From positions 124,001-188,000 of the IMG/VR virus record IMGVR_UViG_3300020380_000001: a DNA stretch of 64,000 nt, one strand, 5' to 3'. Numbering within the stretch: the first letter of the stretch is position 1; each line of letters opens with the position of its first letter. A program made the translations under genes and the position numbers. A model generated the notes under the pieces. It saw only the letters and a program-made list of their open reading frames with translations, made no database searches and had not been told where the DNA came from. Below are positions 12,732 to 61,436 of this stretch, piece by piece.

Positions 12732-14013
12732 GCACATGACTGACAATACCCCATACGTACCCGATCCATCTGAATTTGCATCCCTCTTTTTAGGCATTGC
12801 GATGAACTTGAAAGAGCGCAAAAAGCAACAAGATGCTGACTATGTTGATGTGTCTAAATTCATTACCATGAATGATCGTGATAATGATTTTGACATATCA
12901 AAACGATCGTCCATGCACTTCTTAGGACACGATGCTCCGAATGGTTTTGATATCCTCCCGGCTGTTGATTTAGGCGGCTTAGCCAACACAGATAAAAACG
13001 GGTACGATATGTTTATGCAGGTAGATGGCAGAATTGTCCCAGCCGAATTAAAGTCAACATCACTTAGCCCAACTGACCGTAATAACGAATATTGCCTAGA
13101 CGTAATGTCGCGACTATGCAAGCGTGTGGCATCCGGTGATTCATTTACGTTAGTGCCGCTTGAACAAGCACTAACTATCAGTTTTAAAATAAAAACCCAC
13201 TCAACCATGATGTTGAAACACTGCGACTGTTACTTGTACTTATTTGACGGTGACGCTCGTTCAGACGTTATCCAAATTTGGAAAGTTGCCGGTGATCGTA
13301 TCCTGGCATTCTTAGAAGAAAGACTTAACTTTGACAGCAAGGGGCGTTTAAAAGGCGGTTCCGGCGCGGTGAGTGTTCCTTTACAGTTCTTCATAGACAA
13401 CGGCATCGTGGTTCCGCCAATGTCAAGTAAGCAGTACGGTTGGGAAAATGCGCTTAAAGTATTACGTGAGCACTGTGACTATGACTTCAGAACAGATCAG
13501 CCAGGCCAGAAAAATGGCGAACAATTTATCAAGTATTTGTCGCCGGCACTAGATAAAGAAACAAACGAAACTTTTAAACAGCTACTAGAGCACCGCGGTC
13601 CGTCTGAGTACGAAACTAAGTTTGCAATTAACAAGCTACTTACTGAACGCGGACTAGACACCAGTCGTGTAATTATGACAGTAGTTAACAAAACCAAAGA
13701 CGGCAAGCGTATGTACTTTATGTCCGGTGCTCTACAAAAGAAAGGCAAACCCGGTGACGTGTTAATGATGCTTATGTACGAAGACATCTCCCAAAAAACA
13801 TATATGGTGGTTGTACCATACCGTGAGTATGTCACTACGTATAACGGCCGCCTCTACCTTAATCAAGCTGACGGCACTTATGCACCTCGCCCAAGACAAT
13901 CTAAAAGAGGCGATACTCTTGAAATGTATAACTTTCTTGTAAAAGATGTACATGACGCACTTGAAAAAATTGAAGTGTATTTGAACGAAGAAGCACCTGC
14001 TTCTGATAAATAA
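12730..14013 (+). CDS. putative PD-(D/E)xK-fold endonuclease
   Basis: GYDMFMQVDGRIVPAELKST fits a D-x(n)-(E)xK nuclease core; likely start 12736. Confidence 0.45.
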   Translation: MHMTDNTPYVPDPSEFASLFLGIAMNLKERKKQQDADYVDVSKFITMNDRDNDFDISKRSSMHFLGHDAPNGFDILPAVDLGGLANTDKNGYDMFMQVDGRIVPAELKSTSLSPTDRNNEYCLDVMSRLCKRVASGDSFTLVPLEQALTISFKIKTHSTMMLKHCDCYLYLFDGDARSDVIQIWKVAGDRILAFLEERLNFDSKGRLKGGSGAVSVPLQFFIDNGIVVPPMSSKQYGWENALKVLREHCDYDFRTDQPGQKNGEQFIKYLSPALDKETNETFKQLLEHRGPSEYETKFAINKLLTERGLDTSRVIMTVVNKTKDGKRMYFMSGALQKKGKPGDVLMMLMYEDISQKTYMVVVPYREYVTTYNGRLYLNQADGTYAPRPRQSKRGDTLEMYNFLVKDVHDALEKIEVYLNEEAPASDK

Positions 14014-44613: not shown

Positions 44614-44868
44614 TTACTTCACGCCCATTATGCCCTCGATTTCTTTCTTAGACATCATGACATATGTGTTGTCAATTACCTTGCACCATTTGCCGTTGAT
44701 TTTGGTAGCCACTTCAGTGCGATATTGGTTACAGCAAGGATCGTGACCATCAGGGAATCGCGCATTGAGGCTCACTTTTTCACGATCATGTGGATACGTC
44801 GAAGCGTGGTAAACCTCGCCTCGTTTAATCCCTAGTCTCGTGTCGTTCTTCAGAATCATTACTTCCAC
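44614..44868 (-). CDS. hypothetical protein
   Basis: 84-aa ORF. Confidence 0.65.
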   Translation of the reverse strand: MEVMILKNDTRLGIKRGEVYHASTYPHDREKVSLNARFPDGHDPCCNQYRTEVATKINGKWCKVIDNTYVMMSKKEIEGIMGVK

Positions 44869-45226
44869 TGGGTATTCCTTTTTCTAGAGCTTGAATTTCA
44901 CCGGTATCAGTGTCTAATACGTAGACAAATACACGGCAGTATGAACGTATTGTTGCGATGCGGCACTGTCTACGGTCTGACTGAGAAACTAGTTGCTCGC
45001 AGCCTGACAATGTGGTGTTAAATGCAATGCGGTCCTGGCCGCTCACATTAGTACAATCTTGTTCAGTAAATGGTTGGAATCGGGAACAACCGGTGATAAA
45101 CAGTAATGGGACTAACACACCTAATAGTTTTCGCATACTTCGTTGCTCCGTTATAAATAAGGCCCGGGCGCTTTGAGCAGAACAGACGGCCAGTGCTGTA
45201 TCTACCCATAACGCCCTTGAAGGCAT
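44825..45226 (-). CDS. putative lipoprotein
   Basis: Internal MRKLLGVLVPLLFITGC lipobox suggests a true start near 45136. Confidence 0.55.
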   Translation of the reverse strand: MPSRALWVDTALAVCSAQSARALFITEQRSMRKLLGVLVPLLFITGCSRFQPFTEQDCTNVSGQDRIAFNTTLSGCEQLVSQSDRRQCRIATIRSYCRVFVYVLDTDTGEIQALEKGIPSGSNDSEERHETRD

Positions 45227-45323
45227 AGAATCATCCCTCTATATGTTTTTTGCGCACGGCATACGCGCCGTGGTGGGATTTGCGCCCAAATGAAGCATGC
45301 CAACCAATTTAACTGGTTGAAAA

Positions 45324-45446
45324 GGGTGGAGAGTAAGGAATCGAACCAAATCCGCCGGCTTGGGTTTAATGAAAACTTGCTGTTAGAATACTAATACAGT
45401 ATTCGTTTCATTCGGGGCCGGAGTGCAACCATTACACTTCATCTCC
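45324..45446 (-). ncRNA. tRNA-like gene with structured insert in the anticodon loop (degenerate scaffold)
   Basis: D arm GTGT/GCAC, anticodon stem CCGGC/GCCGG, TTCGATT T loop, imperfect acceptor, ends ACCC; insert carries the 27-nt core at 45378-45404. Confidence 0.65.
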
Positions 45447-45466
45447 ATATTCGCTATTATACGTTT

Positions 45467-45703
45467 TTACTTGTTAGTGTCAAGTAGTTTTAGCAAATTT
45501 TTTAAAAATTCTGGATCTTGTTGTTGGACTGGCGCAGTAGTTGGAATTGGAACGGCGCGTACAAACTCGGGTTCTTTATTTCGTTTGCATGACATGACAC
45601 ATCCGCATGTCATATCAAAAGCAGATTCACCAAAACCGTGACTCACGATGTCTTCTACTTCAGTGACACAGTTGCAATTGGTGCATATTATTATTTCATT
45701 CAT
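45467..45703 (-). CDS. small Zn-ribbon-like protein
   Basis: CxxCxC...CGCxxxC. Confidence 0.6.
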   Translation of the reverse strand: MNEIIICTNCNCVTEVEDIVSHGFGESAFDMTCGCVMSCKRNKEPEFVRAVPIPTTAPVQQQDPEFLKNLLKLLDTNK

Positions 45704-46810: not shown

Positions 46811-46845
46811 ATCGTTTTACCTTGTTTTGTTAGTTTACAATAGAT

Positions 46846-46873
46846 ATGATAGCGCCTTGAGCGTCAATGTCAA
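46846..46873 (-). promoter_or_regulatory. early sigma70 promoter with UP element
   Basis: TTGACA-16-TATCAT, A/T tract upstream. Confidence 0.7.
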
Positions 46874-47129
46874 GGCCTTTTTGAAGAAAAATTAAAAATT
46901 ATTCTTATTCAGCTTAGCTCTGCACGAGTCGCTGCGTCAAGCAAGTCAGTGATAGTTTTCAAGTAGCCTAGACGCAAGTTAACACCGTGGCCGTCGCAAT
47001 CATTGCCAACGTAGCGCGCCATTTCTTCTCTCAGTGCTGCCGCCGACATGTTTTGTAATTTTTCAAATGCTTTGTTTTTCATGATATTACCTTATTAATT
47101 GGGAGGAAGGGAGGGTTGTTAAACAACCC

Positions 47130-47402: not shown

Positions 47403-47443
47403 AGTGTCTTACCTTTGTTTGTTAAATGTCGTCTTCAGTATCT

Positions 47444-47471
47444 ATATTACTACCTTGACGACCAAAGTCAA
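47444..47471 (-). promoter_or_regulatory. early sigma70 promoter with UP element
   Basis: TTGACT-16-TAATAT, A/T tract upstream. Confidence 0.65.
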
Positions 47472-47507
47472 CACCTATTTGAAAAAAATTTCAATTATTT
47501 TTCGACA

Positions 47508-50238: not shown

Positions 50239-50359
50239 TGGTAGGGAGTGCAGGACTCGAACCTGCGACCAACGGCTTATCAGGCAAAAAGGATATGCTG
50301 TTAGAATACTAATACAGTATTCATTTTTACGTTGCTCTACCCAACTGAGCTAACTCCCT
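50239..50359 (-). tRNA. tRNA-Ile(GAT) interrupted by a 44-nt insert (50286-50329) between positions 29 and 30
   Basis: Removing the insert gives a perfect 77-nt cloverleaf: AGGGAGT/ACTCCCT, GCTC/GAGC, ACGGC-CTGATAA-GCCGT, GCAGG-TTCGAGT-CCTGC, ACCA. Confidence 0.85.
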
Positions 50360-51216: not shown

Positions 51217-51235
51217 AGTAACCTCAAGTTAAGGT

Positions 51236-51340
51236 TGCCGGGCCAAGGAATCAAACCTCGTTCGGGTGCGTACTTGCGAAGTTTGCTGCGACAAATCTAA
51301 TACAGACTTGATGGAGTTCCCTCAGAATCATTCACCCGGC
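51236..51340 (-). ncRNA. tRNA-like gene carrying a variant of the 27-nt core
   Basis: GCCGGGT/GCCCGGC acceptor, CGAGG-TTTGATT-CCTTG T arm; CAAGTC-TGTATTA-GATTTG-TCGCAGCA at 51284-51310. Confidence 0.6.
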
Positions 51341-55613: not shown

Positions 55614-55646
55614 AATTTCTTGCCTTGTTTTGTTAAGTTCGTATAC

Positions 55647-55674
55647 ATTATAGCGTTTTGAAGTTCAATGTCAA
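55647..55674 (-). promoter_or_regulatory. early sigma70 promoter with UP element
   Basis: TTGACA-16-TATAAT, A/T tract upstream. Confidence 0.75.
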
Positions 55675-55754
55675 CATCTATTTGAAAATAATTTCAAAAA
55701 TAGATACAAAAAGAGCCCTGTTATTAACAGAGCTCAGCGTAACACGAAGTTATA

Positions 55755-61174: not shown

Positions 61175-61194
61175 GCCAGAACCTCATTATAAAA

Positions 61195-61346
61195 TGGACG
61201 AGCCGCCGGGATTCGAACCCGGGAATACAGAATACTTCCGCTATTTGCATTTCGCTTGGCATTGTCTGTACCTTTAAACCCCTCATACCAATACTTGGCT
61301 TAAAGAACCGATGCACCGATTCTTAAAGTTGCAAGGAGTCAGCCCG
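61195..61346 (-). ncRNA. 152-nt tRNA-like ncRNA with canonical T arm and expanded core
   Basis: CGGGCTG/CGGCTCG acceptor (G3-U70 type pair), CCGGG-TTCGAAT-CCCGG, TCCA end; starts 10 nt after tRNA-Trp. Confidence 0.65.
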
Positions 61347-61356
61347 ATTGTTAAAA

Positions 61357-61436
61357 TGGCGCAGGTGTAGGGAGTCGAACCCTCAAGTCTCTCGACACGG
61401 TTTTGGAGACCGCTTTGCTCGCCAATGCGCACCTAC
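61357..61436 (-). tRNA. tRNA-Trp(CCA) with unusual variable-arm hairpin
   Basis: GTAGGTG/CACCTGC, GCGGT-CTCCAAA-ACCGT, G73, CCA; GTC-GAGA-GAC extra arm, weak D stem. Confidence 0.8.

Follow-up and report, generated by a model that had tools for sequence, protein, structure and literature searches.

A tRNA-shaped RNA gene of a marine jumbo phage carries a module associated in other phages with a predicted Ro60-like protein

The window analysed here is a 64 000-nt stretch (positions 124 001 to 188 000) of the IMG/VR record IMGVR_UViG_3300020380_000001, which belongs to the 306.5-kb genome of a marine jumbo phage (hereafter G000). On its minus strand lie three copies of a short module inserted in tRNA-like genes, and no further copy exists in the genome. 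The features discussed below are as follows (coordinates of the window, except for the last one).

45456..45483 (minus strand): consensus sigma-70 promoter (TTGACA, 16 nt, TATAAT), matching 12 of 12 positions.
45324..45447 (minus strand): 124-nt tRNA-shaped non-coding RNA gene, module copy 1, the locus under study.
45441..45447 (minus strand): acceptor-type stem, 5' strand UGGAGAU, pairing with 45327-45333 (CUCUCCA).
45423..45438 (minus strand): D-arm equivalent (AGUG / UAAUGGUUG / CACU) with the GG dinucleotide.
45417..45421 (minus strand): 5' strand (CCGGC) of the 5-bp anticodon-type stem, pairing with 45355-45359 (GCCGG).
45406..45412 (minus strand): closing helix of the module, 5' strand AAUGAAA, pairing with 45368-45374 (UUUCAUU); the bases CGAA lie just 5' of it.
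45386..45404 (minus strand): 7-bp hairpin GAAUACU-GUAUU-AGUAUUC, the helical part of the conserved module.
45377..45385 (minus strand): single-stranded box UAACAGCAA, the invariant part of the motif family.
45334..45350 (minus strand): T-arm equivalent (UUUGG / UUCGAUU / CCUUA).
50239..50359 (minus strand): module copy 2, a tRNA-Ile(GAU) gene with a 44-nt insert (50286-50329) in the 5' strand of the anticodon stem, between ACG and GC.
51233..51340 (minus strand): module copy 3, a tRNA-like RNA with an acceptor stem and T arm only, carrying a diverged module (hairpin 51292-51310, box UCGCAGCAA at 51283-51291; covariance model hit at 49.1 bits).
G000:55838-57274 (outside the window): gene for a 478-aa protein with DUF2828/DUF7788 domains.

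The observation of the earlier note, namely a tRNA scaffold with imperfect stems carrying a perfectly kept insert, is confirmed. Indeed, the 27-nt core GAATACTGTATTAGTATTCTAACAGCA at 45404..45378 is identical to 50322..50296, within the insert of the tRNA-Ile(GAT) gene 4.9 kb away, the shared stretch being 31 nt with one mismatch; with only three copies in the genome, this is not chance. The 7-bp closing stem reported in the note is part of the RNAfold minimum-energy structure, whereas the core's own 7-bp hairpin had not been described there. The scaffold defects are real as well: the acceptor stem has a U7/C66 mismatch (six pairs remaining), the T stem has two U-U mismatches, and the 3' end reads CUCUCCA-CCC. 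The RNA most likely starts at 45447, one base beyond the end given in the note, the last base of the -10 hexamer lying 8 nt upstream of it.

In place of an anticodon loop, the 5-bp stem continues into a 56-nt arm. A scan of all 4227 Rfam families at E up to 10 over 45290-45480 returned only tRNA (RF00005), which matches the locus over the full model with a 56-nt insertion at 22.0 bits (E 0.016 in this 191-nt search), below the gathering score of 29, and flags exactly the three non-canonical pairs. The acceptor, D and T arms, a GG-containing D loop and a UUCRAnY T loop are nonetheless all present. ARAGORN finds the locus only in relaxed mode, as a ‘tRNA(cga) with a 50-nt intron’, and no choice of excision gives a 7-nt anticodon loop with U33: the best parse gives CCCGAAA, or CACGAAA in the relative described below, so position 33 is C or A. 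This locus is thus unlikely to encode a decoding tRNA. By contrast, copy 2 is called by ARAGORN in its intron mode and scores 34.9 bits on the Rfam tRNA model, and the 77-nt sequence left once its insert is removed is a clean tRNA ending in CCA. Rfam searches over the other loci likewise returned only tRNA.

No close relative was found by megablast among GenBank phages, but a 90%-identical lineage (L011/L021, hereafter lineage B) allowed us to compare the orthologous loci, as the note had proposed. Over 124 nt, 17 differences separate the two lineages, none of them in the 29-nt core against 17 in the other 95 nt (Fisher P=0.007). The hairpin is maintained through compensatory and G-U changes in the diverged third copy: all 42 cells are paired across six copies, three of the seven pairs change on both sides, and the G-U pairs fit only the tRNA-sense strand. 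CAGCA is invariant in all six copies. The promoter is conserved in lineage B (TTGACG / TATAAT), and the anticodon-type stem is unchanged. In the closing helix, three substitutions in lineage B would shift the pairing to a 5-bp GAAAA/UUUUC register, as inferred from sequence. In copy 2 of lineage B, the anticodon is UGU.

These results support only part of the note's interpretation. The proposal that the insert, rather than tRNA function, is the conserved unit, with the tRNA body acting as a carrier, is supported. That the scaffold's own stems decay is not supported. In lineage B, the same positions pair, with 7/7 pairs in the acceptor stem (owing to G7) and 5/5 in the T stem (UGAGG / UUCAAUU / CCUUG, two of them G-U), even though the Rfam tRNA model gave no hit to this orthologue; the D arm with GG, the T loop and the 5-bp anticodon-type stem are kept in both lineages. 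The tRNA shape therefore looks maintained, as expected for a tRNA mimic, although no parent tRNA of the scaffold could be identified and the polarity of the three changes cannot be set without an outgroup. Very recent mobility, the other option raised in the note, is not supported either, as all three copies sit at the same sites in two lineages that are 10% diverged, without further copies. As for transcription, the promoter is perfect and conserved, but no contig from four metatranscriptomes covered the locus; as these are contigs only, this absence proves little.

The module belongs to a wider, uncatalogued motif consisting of a helix, two bases, then ACAGCAA, with the extended family consensus ttaAgGAynCt-TACAGCAA. 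This motif sits in or beside tRNA-like genes in more than 100 phage contigs; it recurs in six or more tRNA-like genes of one viral record (G005) and in at least 117 viral contigs. A protein family of about 475 aa is encoded in 47-49 of these 117 short loci, where all 48 boxes are on the same strand as the gene, at a median distance of 585 nt. The gene is present in 5 of 5 motif-bearing records examined first and in 44 of 50 further records, including 22 of 24 complete ones. For comparison, RtcB is found in 6 of these 50 records, and the protein in 710 of 50 697 GenBank phage records. However, this co-occurrence could partly reflect shared ancestry of tRNA-rich phages, and the counts stand without a matched control set of tRNA-rich phages lacking the motif; the pattern scanned as a control proved unsuitable, as it hit a non-tRNA sequence.

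The protein of G000 matches PHROG 850 ‘RNA-binding protein’, and its AlphaFold model (pLDDT 85.5) retrieves only Ro60/TROVE proteins as its top 13 Foldseek PDB hits, whereas Pfam TROVE itself gave no hit in G000. In cultured phages of Mycobacterium, Listeria, Vibrio and E. coli, the boxes lie directly beside this gene. Indeed, the same 9-mer, UAACAGCAA, stands next to the Ro-like gene of Listeria phage LP-124, and the RNA adjacent to the gene in the mycobacteriophage is hit by the Rfam YrlA model (RF02553; 39.3 bits, E 2.6e-7).

Our preferred reading, held with moderate confidence, is that the locus is a separately promoted gene for a tRNA-shaped non-coding RNA that works like a bacterial or phage Y RNA of the YrlA type. 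In this view, the tRNA-like body would provide folding, end processing, stability and possibly docking to tRNA-binding enzymes, whereas the helix-plus-box module would be the binding element for the phage's own Ro60-like ring protein. The resulting particle would then act in RNA surveillance, tRNA handling or counter-defence, as Ro60/Y-RNA/PNPase complexes do. What our analysis establishes is the anatomy of the locus, the conservation of its core, the covariation of the hairpin, the motif family, its co-occurrence and physical linkage with the Ro60-like gene, and the (model-based) Ro60 fold of the protein; transcription and end processing, direct binding and the downstream function are inferences. 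Several observations do not fit well with this reading. In G000, the protein gene lies about 113 kb from the three RNAs and no box sits next to it. The Rfam YrlA model does not hit the locus, and the topology differs from that of YrlA. Furthermore, copy 2 becomes a perfect tRNA once the insert is removed, which fits an intron at least as well.

Accordingly, the main rival, which we consider possible but less likely, is a protein-dependent intron or processing signal: an endonuclease would recognize the helix plus ACAGCAA and cut at both junctions, and a ligase would rejoin the exons, permuted versions being circularized first. The locus would then be an intron carrier whose exons have lost tRNA function, or a pseudo-tRNA, and the Ro60-like protein could be the recognition subunit. 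Besides the clean excision of exactly 44 nt from copy 2, the same tRNA chassis carries an insert at the same ACG|GC site with anticodons GAU, UGU, GUU and UGG in four phages, the Asn version having the expected G73, and many full-length Rfam tRNA hits of 110-141 nt carry the box. In another viral record (G003) and in a metatranscriptome contig, the 3' half precedes the 5' half, and leader and trailer can pair to rebuild the helix-CAGCA-helix motif. LP-124 has RtcB-like and RNA-ligase genes 1.3-4 kb from the Ro-like gene, and G000 has a weak RNA_ligase-domain ORF (690 aa).

However, no spliced joint was seen in the metatranscriptome contigs, and one RNA-library contig carries copy 2 unspliced, although contigs are weak evidence and DNA carry-over is possible. 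Searches of G000 for RtcB, the tRNA-intron endonuclease (PF01974), T4 Rnl1 (without a positive control) and the CCA-adding enzyme found none of them, and RtcB is rare among motif-bearing records. The ligase-like ORF has no PDB or PHROG match and is absent from the complete motif-bearing genome G004, and was thus dropped as a partner. The lack of any excision restoring U33 at the studied locus, and the occurrence of boxes outside tRNA bodies, also argue against an intron. Moreover, the permuted forms equal the known YrlA topology, which needs no ligation. Two known intron types do not fit: group I introns have a catalytic core (P3-P9) and usually 200 nt or more in the anticodon loop, whereas the inserts here are 44-56 nt, gave no group I hit and, in copy 2, lie in the stem; and no 3-4-3 bulge-helix-bulge motif can be drawn by manual inspection at the junctions of copy 2.

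A bolder version, which seems unlikely but is not excluded and would be of high interest if true, is that the helix-N2-ACAGCAA module is the recognition element of a protein-only RNA cut-and-rejoin pathway in phage-infected bacteria, with the Ro60-like ring as its recognition subunit. Insert-bearing genes such as copy 2 (tRNA-Ile/Thr/Asn/Pro on one chassis) would then mature into working tRNAs and permuted genes through circular intermediates, as a bacterial and phage counterpart of archaeal and algal tRNA splicing, the locus studied here being a dedicated cassette that releases the insert RNA.

Two further readings are improbable. The insert could be a selfish miniature palindromic element that recently copied itself into tRNA genes and killed this one, which would now be decaying, as the core is identical in two unrelated scaffolds at different positions in the anticodon arm and the scaffold has three stem mismatches. 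Against this stand the three fixed copies, the compensatory changes, conservation of the core above background, the promoter retained in both lineages, the intact stems of lineage B, the lack of visible terminal duplications, and the absence of any copy with a full hairpin in one genome each of 185 579 prokaryote species. Alternatively, the roughly 19-nt consensus could be a DNA signal such as a promoter for a phage single-subunit RNA polymerase: it resembles the SP6 promoter ATTTAGGTGACACTATAG, its conservation is linear in sequence, and many family members lack a clear local hairpin. Yet no T7-type RNA polymerase domain was found in three complete motif-bearing genomes (a search without positive control), the motif lies inside tRNA bodies in sense orientation, and the G-U pairs and covariation point to RNA.

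Least likely is a decoy for a host hairpin-specific nuclease (a solitary CRISPR-repeat mimic, or RNA anti-CRISPR, or an antitoxin-RNA mimic) displayed on a tRNA scaffold, since despite the type I repeat layout of the core, a hairpin followed by an 8-nt tail, no tandem arrays with this loop and tail were found in the genome collection, its 28 single hits are chance-like with none forming the full 7-bp stem, and the motif is shared by phages of Actinobacteria, Firmicutes and Proteobacteria, which argues against mimicry of one host's repeat. A tmRNA is not supported, as neither ARAGORN nor Rfam gave such a hit at the locus and the frames starting at the GCA of the box have no conserved stop across copies or lineages. 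Kink-turn, RNase P minihelix mimicry and anticodon-arm mimicry were inspected by hand and none fits, and an SOS-box-like CTGT-N12-ACAG has the wrong spacing.

Gene finders occasionally report ‘intron-containing’ or odd tRNAs in large phages, which have had no explanation. Our results tie one widespread class of them to a defined sequence and structure motif and to a predicted Ro60-like protein, whose family is present in at least 710 sequenced phages, including workhorse phages of E. coli, Listeria, Staphylococcus, Campylobacter, Vibrio and Mycobacterium. If our reading is correct, Y-RNA-like tRNA mimics can be built in the normal tRNA gene order as well as in the permuted one, and even on what looks like a genuine tRNA, raising the question of whether these RNAs bridge translation, RNA repair and counter-defence.

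Among known systems, engineered tRNA scaffolds also display a foreign RNA domain in the anticodon arm of a tRNA body, but are artificial, and the permuted tRNA genes of red and green algae, whose leader and trailer pair at the anticodon-stem side, use the bulge-helix-bulge motif and the archaeal-type endonuclease, neither of which was found here. The T4 RNAC and RNAD are small stable phage RNAs of unknown function encoded among tRNA genes (PMC9697503). In Lak megaphages, a different phage group with different hosts, tRNA genes are interrupted by short, highly conserved ‘enigmatic’ introns too small to be group I introns, with no known splicing route and no reported link to Ro60 (Devoto et al. 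2019, PMC6784885).

Closer to our locus are YrlA and the bacterial Y RNAs, which mimic tRNA and sit next to Ro60 (Rsr) in bacteria and phages (Chen et al. 2014, PMC4201824). As in YrlA, a tRNA-like domain (T arm, D arm, acceptor-type stem) is joined to a helix, protein-binding in YrlA and putatively so here; several RNAs are found per genome, in genomes encoding a Ro60-type ring protein (here by predicted fold); and CGAA(UG) sits 5' of the module, the YrlA consensus also starting ..CGAAUGC. In YrlA, however, the RNA ends form the Ro-binding stem and the acceptor-type stem is closed by a loop, whereas here the ends are at the acceptor stem, with the promoter abutting it, and the module is closed by a loop; permuted relatives do exist in other phages. 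The ACAGCAA box lies outside the Rfam model, and a text search of that paper for ‘ACAGC’ found nothing. The putative partner protein also differs, being DUF2828/DUF7788 and not matched by Pfam TROVE, and gene and RNAs are unlinked in G000.

The Ro60 homologue of Thermus phage phiLo (PMC12135203; PDB 9kop, 9l5y), the top structural match to the G000 protein at only about 16% sequence identity, binds phage-encoded Y-like RNAs (Yrl1/Yrl2) and host PNPase, which it is proposed to hijack; these RNAs are described as classical stem-bulge-stem Y RNAs with a CGAA motif next to the gene, not as tRNA genes with inserts. Finally, the Ro60-like gp130 of the Felix-O1-like phage Bas63 lies directly upstream of the tRNA cluster and counters the Ppl defence system, and its authors speculated that some of that phage's ‘tRNA genes’ are Y RNAs, without identifying an RNA partner or motif (bioRxiv 10.1101/2024.10.10.617714). 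We take gp130 to be of the same family as gp109, the Ro-like protein of the related phage JH2, which is 36% identical to that of G000 and in whose genome four boxes lie between tRNAs. The present work thereby turns this published guess into a testable proposal, with specific candidate RNAs and a shared box.

The 306.5-kb viral record in which the window occupies bases 124001-188000 carries direct terminal repeats and comes from marine metagenomes. Its family-B DNA polymerase is about 40% identical to those of very large phages such as Agrobacterium phage Atu_ph07 and Vibrio phage 2.275.O. All tRNA genes lie on the minus strand. Three copies of the module under study, and further tRNA-like or neighbouring features, were noted in the window as follows:

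45324-45447, minus strand: the finding, a tRNA-shaped sequence (copy 1).
50239-50359, minus strand: a tRNA-Ile(GAU) gene with a 44-nt insert (copy 2).
51233-51340: a tRNA-like RNA carrying a third, diverged copy.
44825-45226, minus strand: the ORF just downstream of the tRNA-like RNA, in which an internal methionine is followed by a lipoprotein-type signal (..LLFITGC); from a reading of the sequence, it may be co-transcribed from the same promoter.
46841-46901, 47439-47499 and 55642-55702, minus strand: repeated promoter cassettes of about 60 nt, each an A/T-rich upstream part followed by TTGAC..TAT..T, standing in front of small ORFs across the tRNA region.
61188-61339, minus strand: a tRNA-like RNA of roughly 150 nt with acceptor strands CGGGCUG/CGGCUCG, a perfect T arm, an encoded UCCA end and a long internal hairpin, but no ACAGCA box; neither ARAGORN nor Rfam calls it.
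61357-61436, minus strand: a probable tRNA-Trp(CCA), found only with relaxed ARAGORN settings and seen by Rfam only as a weak tRNA-Sec match.

Read on the minus strand, 45447..45324 displays an acceptor strand UGGAGAU, a D arm with GG and a 5-bp stem CCGGC/GCCGG, which encloses 56 nt instead of a 7-nt loop and is followed by a T arm UUUGG-UUCGAUU-CCUUA, the strand CUCUCCA, and CCC. These 56 nt consist of a closing helix (AAUGAAA/UUUCAUU), a 7-bp hairpin (GAAUACU-GUAUU-AGUAUUC) and a single-stranded UAACAGCAA. The 27-nt core is identical to part of the 44-nt insert of copy 2. The Rfam tRNA model matches the finding full length at only 22.0 bits, against a threshold of 29, and flags the acceptor 7-66 pair and two T-stem pairs, whereas copy 2 scores 34.9 bits. 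A 12/12 consensus sigma-70 promoter ends 8 nt upstream of the 5′ end. The description given in the earlier note, namely an insert core shared with the tRNA-Ile gene and carried by a degenerate tRNA scaffold, is therefore correct.

The interpretation proposed in that note, in which the insert is the conserved unit, the scaffold decays and the element may have moved very recently, is only partly supported. Two near-identical relatives exist (contig L020 equals the window; contigs L011 and L021 represent a second lineage, hereafter lineage B), lineage B being 89.8% identical over 14 kb. In the 124-nt locus there are 17 differences, of which none falls in the 29-nt core, 11 fall in the 74-nt scaffold and 6 fall in the 21 nt flanking the core (Fisher P=0.007). 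Across the six copies (three loci, two lineages), all 42 hairpin cells pair, three of the seven pairs change on both sides, and the G-U pairs are compatible only with RNA of the tRNA strand. A covariance model finds exactly three copies in each genome. However, the scaffold is not simply decaying: in lineage B, the acceptor stem is 7/7 and the T stem 5/5, and the D arm, T loop and 5-bp stem are kept. Likewise, all copies are at the same sites in both lineages, so that recent mobility is not supported.

The insert-bearing tRNA of copy 2 (window 50239-50359, minus strand; L011:7249-7369) has anticodon GAU in the window lineage and UGU in lineage B, while the rest of the 77-nt exon sequence differs at only one base; both genomes also carry ordinary tRNA-Ile(GAU) and tRNA-Thr(UGU) genes elsewhere. 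Outside the window, a 97-nt tRNA with a long variable arm (G000:C1:189501-189597, minus strand, G000 being the record of this phage; G001:27697-27791 in lineage B) has A33 and anticodon UUA, an ochre-suppressor type, in this phage, but CGG in lineage B, all three anticodon bases being different while the body is nearly unchanged. A T arm plus a CCA end, with a possible CUA (amber) anticodon loop, was also observed at G000:C1:~12975-13070 (plus strand), and is not called by ARAGORN.

To determine whether the module extends beyond these genomes, we searched viral contigs with the 5′ exon plus the start of the insert from copy 2, which retrieved other marine phage contigs. In one of them (record G005), five of seven ARAGORN-called tRNAs carry inserts, all five having a hairpin followed by (A/G)CAGCAA, and a sixth such gene was detected in a separate scan. 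The same tRNA chassis as copy 2 occurs with anticodons GAU (window), UGU (lineage B), GUU (G005, with discriminator G73) and UGG (record G003, another phage). In G003, the gene is permuted: the 3′ half ends in CCA and lies 137 nt upstream of the 5′ half, and its leader and trailer can pair to rebuild a helix-CAGCA-helix. The same order is seen in a 2,208-nt metatranscriptome contig from another organism (run X20, record 11, aligned to window 50253-50343), which holds the 3′ half of a tRNA like copy 2, then 30 nt (acceptor 3′ strand, AAA, acceptor 5′ strand), then the 5′ half, with complementary flanks (UAAACACG / CGUGUUUA). A permuted tRNA-like RNA is thus present in an RNA library. Two motif-bearing phage contigs, L066:13814-14179 (minus strand, record G003) and L174:4623-4908, encode circularly permuted, alphaproteobacterial-type tmRNAs (Rfam RF01849 at 119 bits; RF04321 at 106 and 57 bits).

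The pattern TACAGCAA-N15-45-GGTTCGANTCC was retrieved from at least 117 viral contigs, mostly 50-420 kb in length. The 113 distinct segments share extra conservation upstream of the box, with consensus ttaAgGAynCt-TACAGCAA, followed by a G-poor stretch, and the window copies fit this consensus (AUUAGUAUUCU-AACAGCAA). Many of these hits are full-length Rfam tRNA matches of 110-141 nt, and no other Rfam family covers the insert. Not every insert is of this type, as a tRNA-like gene of a distant relative (L019:14144-14266, record G002) carries a 51-nt insert on the 5′ side of the anticodon with a different sequence and no ACAGCA box; no Ro-like gene is present in that 31-kb fragment.

In our attempt to identify a partner protein, the ORFs of the 117 loci were clustered, and one family of about 475 aa appeared in 47-49 of them. 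In those loci, all 48 boxes are on the same strand as this gene, at a median distance of 585 nt. The protein carries DUF2828 and DUF7788 domains, has a weak VWA match, and belongs to PHROG 850 ‘RNA-binding protein’. It is encoded in all five motif-bearing records first examined, including this phage at G000:55838-57274, and in 44 of 50 further motif-bearing records, including 22 of 24 complete ones, whereas RtcB is in only 6 of 50. By tblastn, it occurs in 710 of 50,697 GenBank phage records, and the same family is annotated ‘Ro-like RNA binding protein’ in mycobacteriophages. An AlphaFold model of the protein of this phage has pLDDT 85.5 and pTM 0.82, and its 13 best Foldseek PDB hits are all Ro60/TROVE structures (Thermus phage phiLo Ro60, Xenopus and human Ro60, and Deinococcus Rsr), with E-values from 5e-10 to 1e-4 over the full length.

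The motif also sits next to this gene in unrelated cultured phages. In mycobacteriophage Clautastrophe, three boxes lie in the 380-nt gap right after the gene, and the RNA between them, which has the permuted T-arm, acceptor, D-arm order, is hit by Rfam YrlA at 39.3 bits (E 2.6e-7, below the gathering score). In Listeria phage LP-124 (contig L315, 4944-11449), three units of the form helix-UA-ACAGCAA-UUAC lie within 330 nt upstream of the DUF2828 Ro-like gene, itself located between the tRNA cluster and downstream genes annotated as RtcB-like tRNA-splicing ligase and RNA ligase, an arrangement that echoes the bacterial rsr-yrlA-rtcBA order. In the KVP40-like Vibrio phage V09, a box lies 27 nt upstream of the gene's start codon, and in the Felix-O1-like E. 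coli phage JH2, the gene is followed by the tRNA cluster, with four boxes between tRNAs.

The finding is most likely a Y-RNA-like tRNA mimic. In this view, its own promoter would start transcription at the tRNA-like 5′ end, the tRNA-shaped body would give folding, processing and stability, the helix-plus-UAACAGCAA arm would bind the phage Ro60-like ring protein, and the particle would then act on other RNAs or counter a host defence. While the anatomy, the conservation, the motif family, the linkage and the predicted protein fold are established by the present analysis, the binding, the processing and the function are all inferred.

Alternatively, or in addition, the module could be a protein-dependent intron or a permuted-tRNA processing signal. 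Indeed, copy 2 is a perfect tRNA once 44 nt are removed, and its chassis carries four different anticodons in four phages. However, no joints were seen among the metatranscriptome contigs examined, no splicing enzymes were found in this phage, RtcB co-occurs poorly with the motif, the finding locus cannot yield a canonical anticodon loop, and the permuted forms match the known YrlA topology, which needs no ligation. A 690-aa ORF outside the window (G000:C1:62512-64584, plus strand; L060:754-2826) has a weak RNA_ligase (PF09414) domain at 29.3 bits and no PDB or PHROG match; it is conserved in lineage B (91% identity) but absent from the motif-bearing genome G004. A selfish element, a CRISPR or antitoxin decoy, a phage-polymerase promoter and a tmRNA were also considered, and each was rejected on the evidence against it.

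Within the literature accessible to our search, we found no description of the conserved ACAGCAA box, of its link to the DUF2828/DUF7788 branch of Ro60-like proteins across hundreds of phages, of the non-permuted form in which the module sits in the anticodon arm of an ordinary-looking tRNA gene (including an apparently genuine tRNA), or of RNAs unlinked from the protein gene, as in this genome. Ro60-linked, tRNA-mimicking Y RNAs in phages are, however, already known. Bacterial and phage Y RNAs of the YrlA type mimic tRNA and are encoded beside Ro60 (PMC4201824), and a phage Ro60 binds phage Y-like RNAs and host PNPase (PMC12135203). Finally, the Ro60-like protein gp130 of Bas63 counters the Ppl defence, and its authors guessed that some neighbouring ‘tRNAs’ are Y RNAs (10.1101/2024.10.10.617714).
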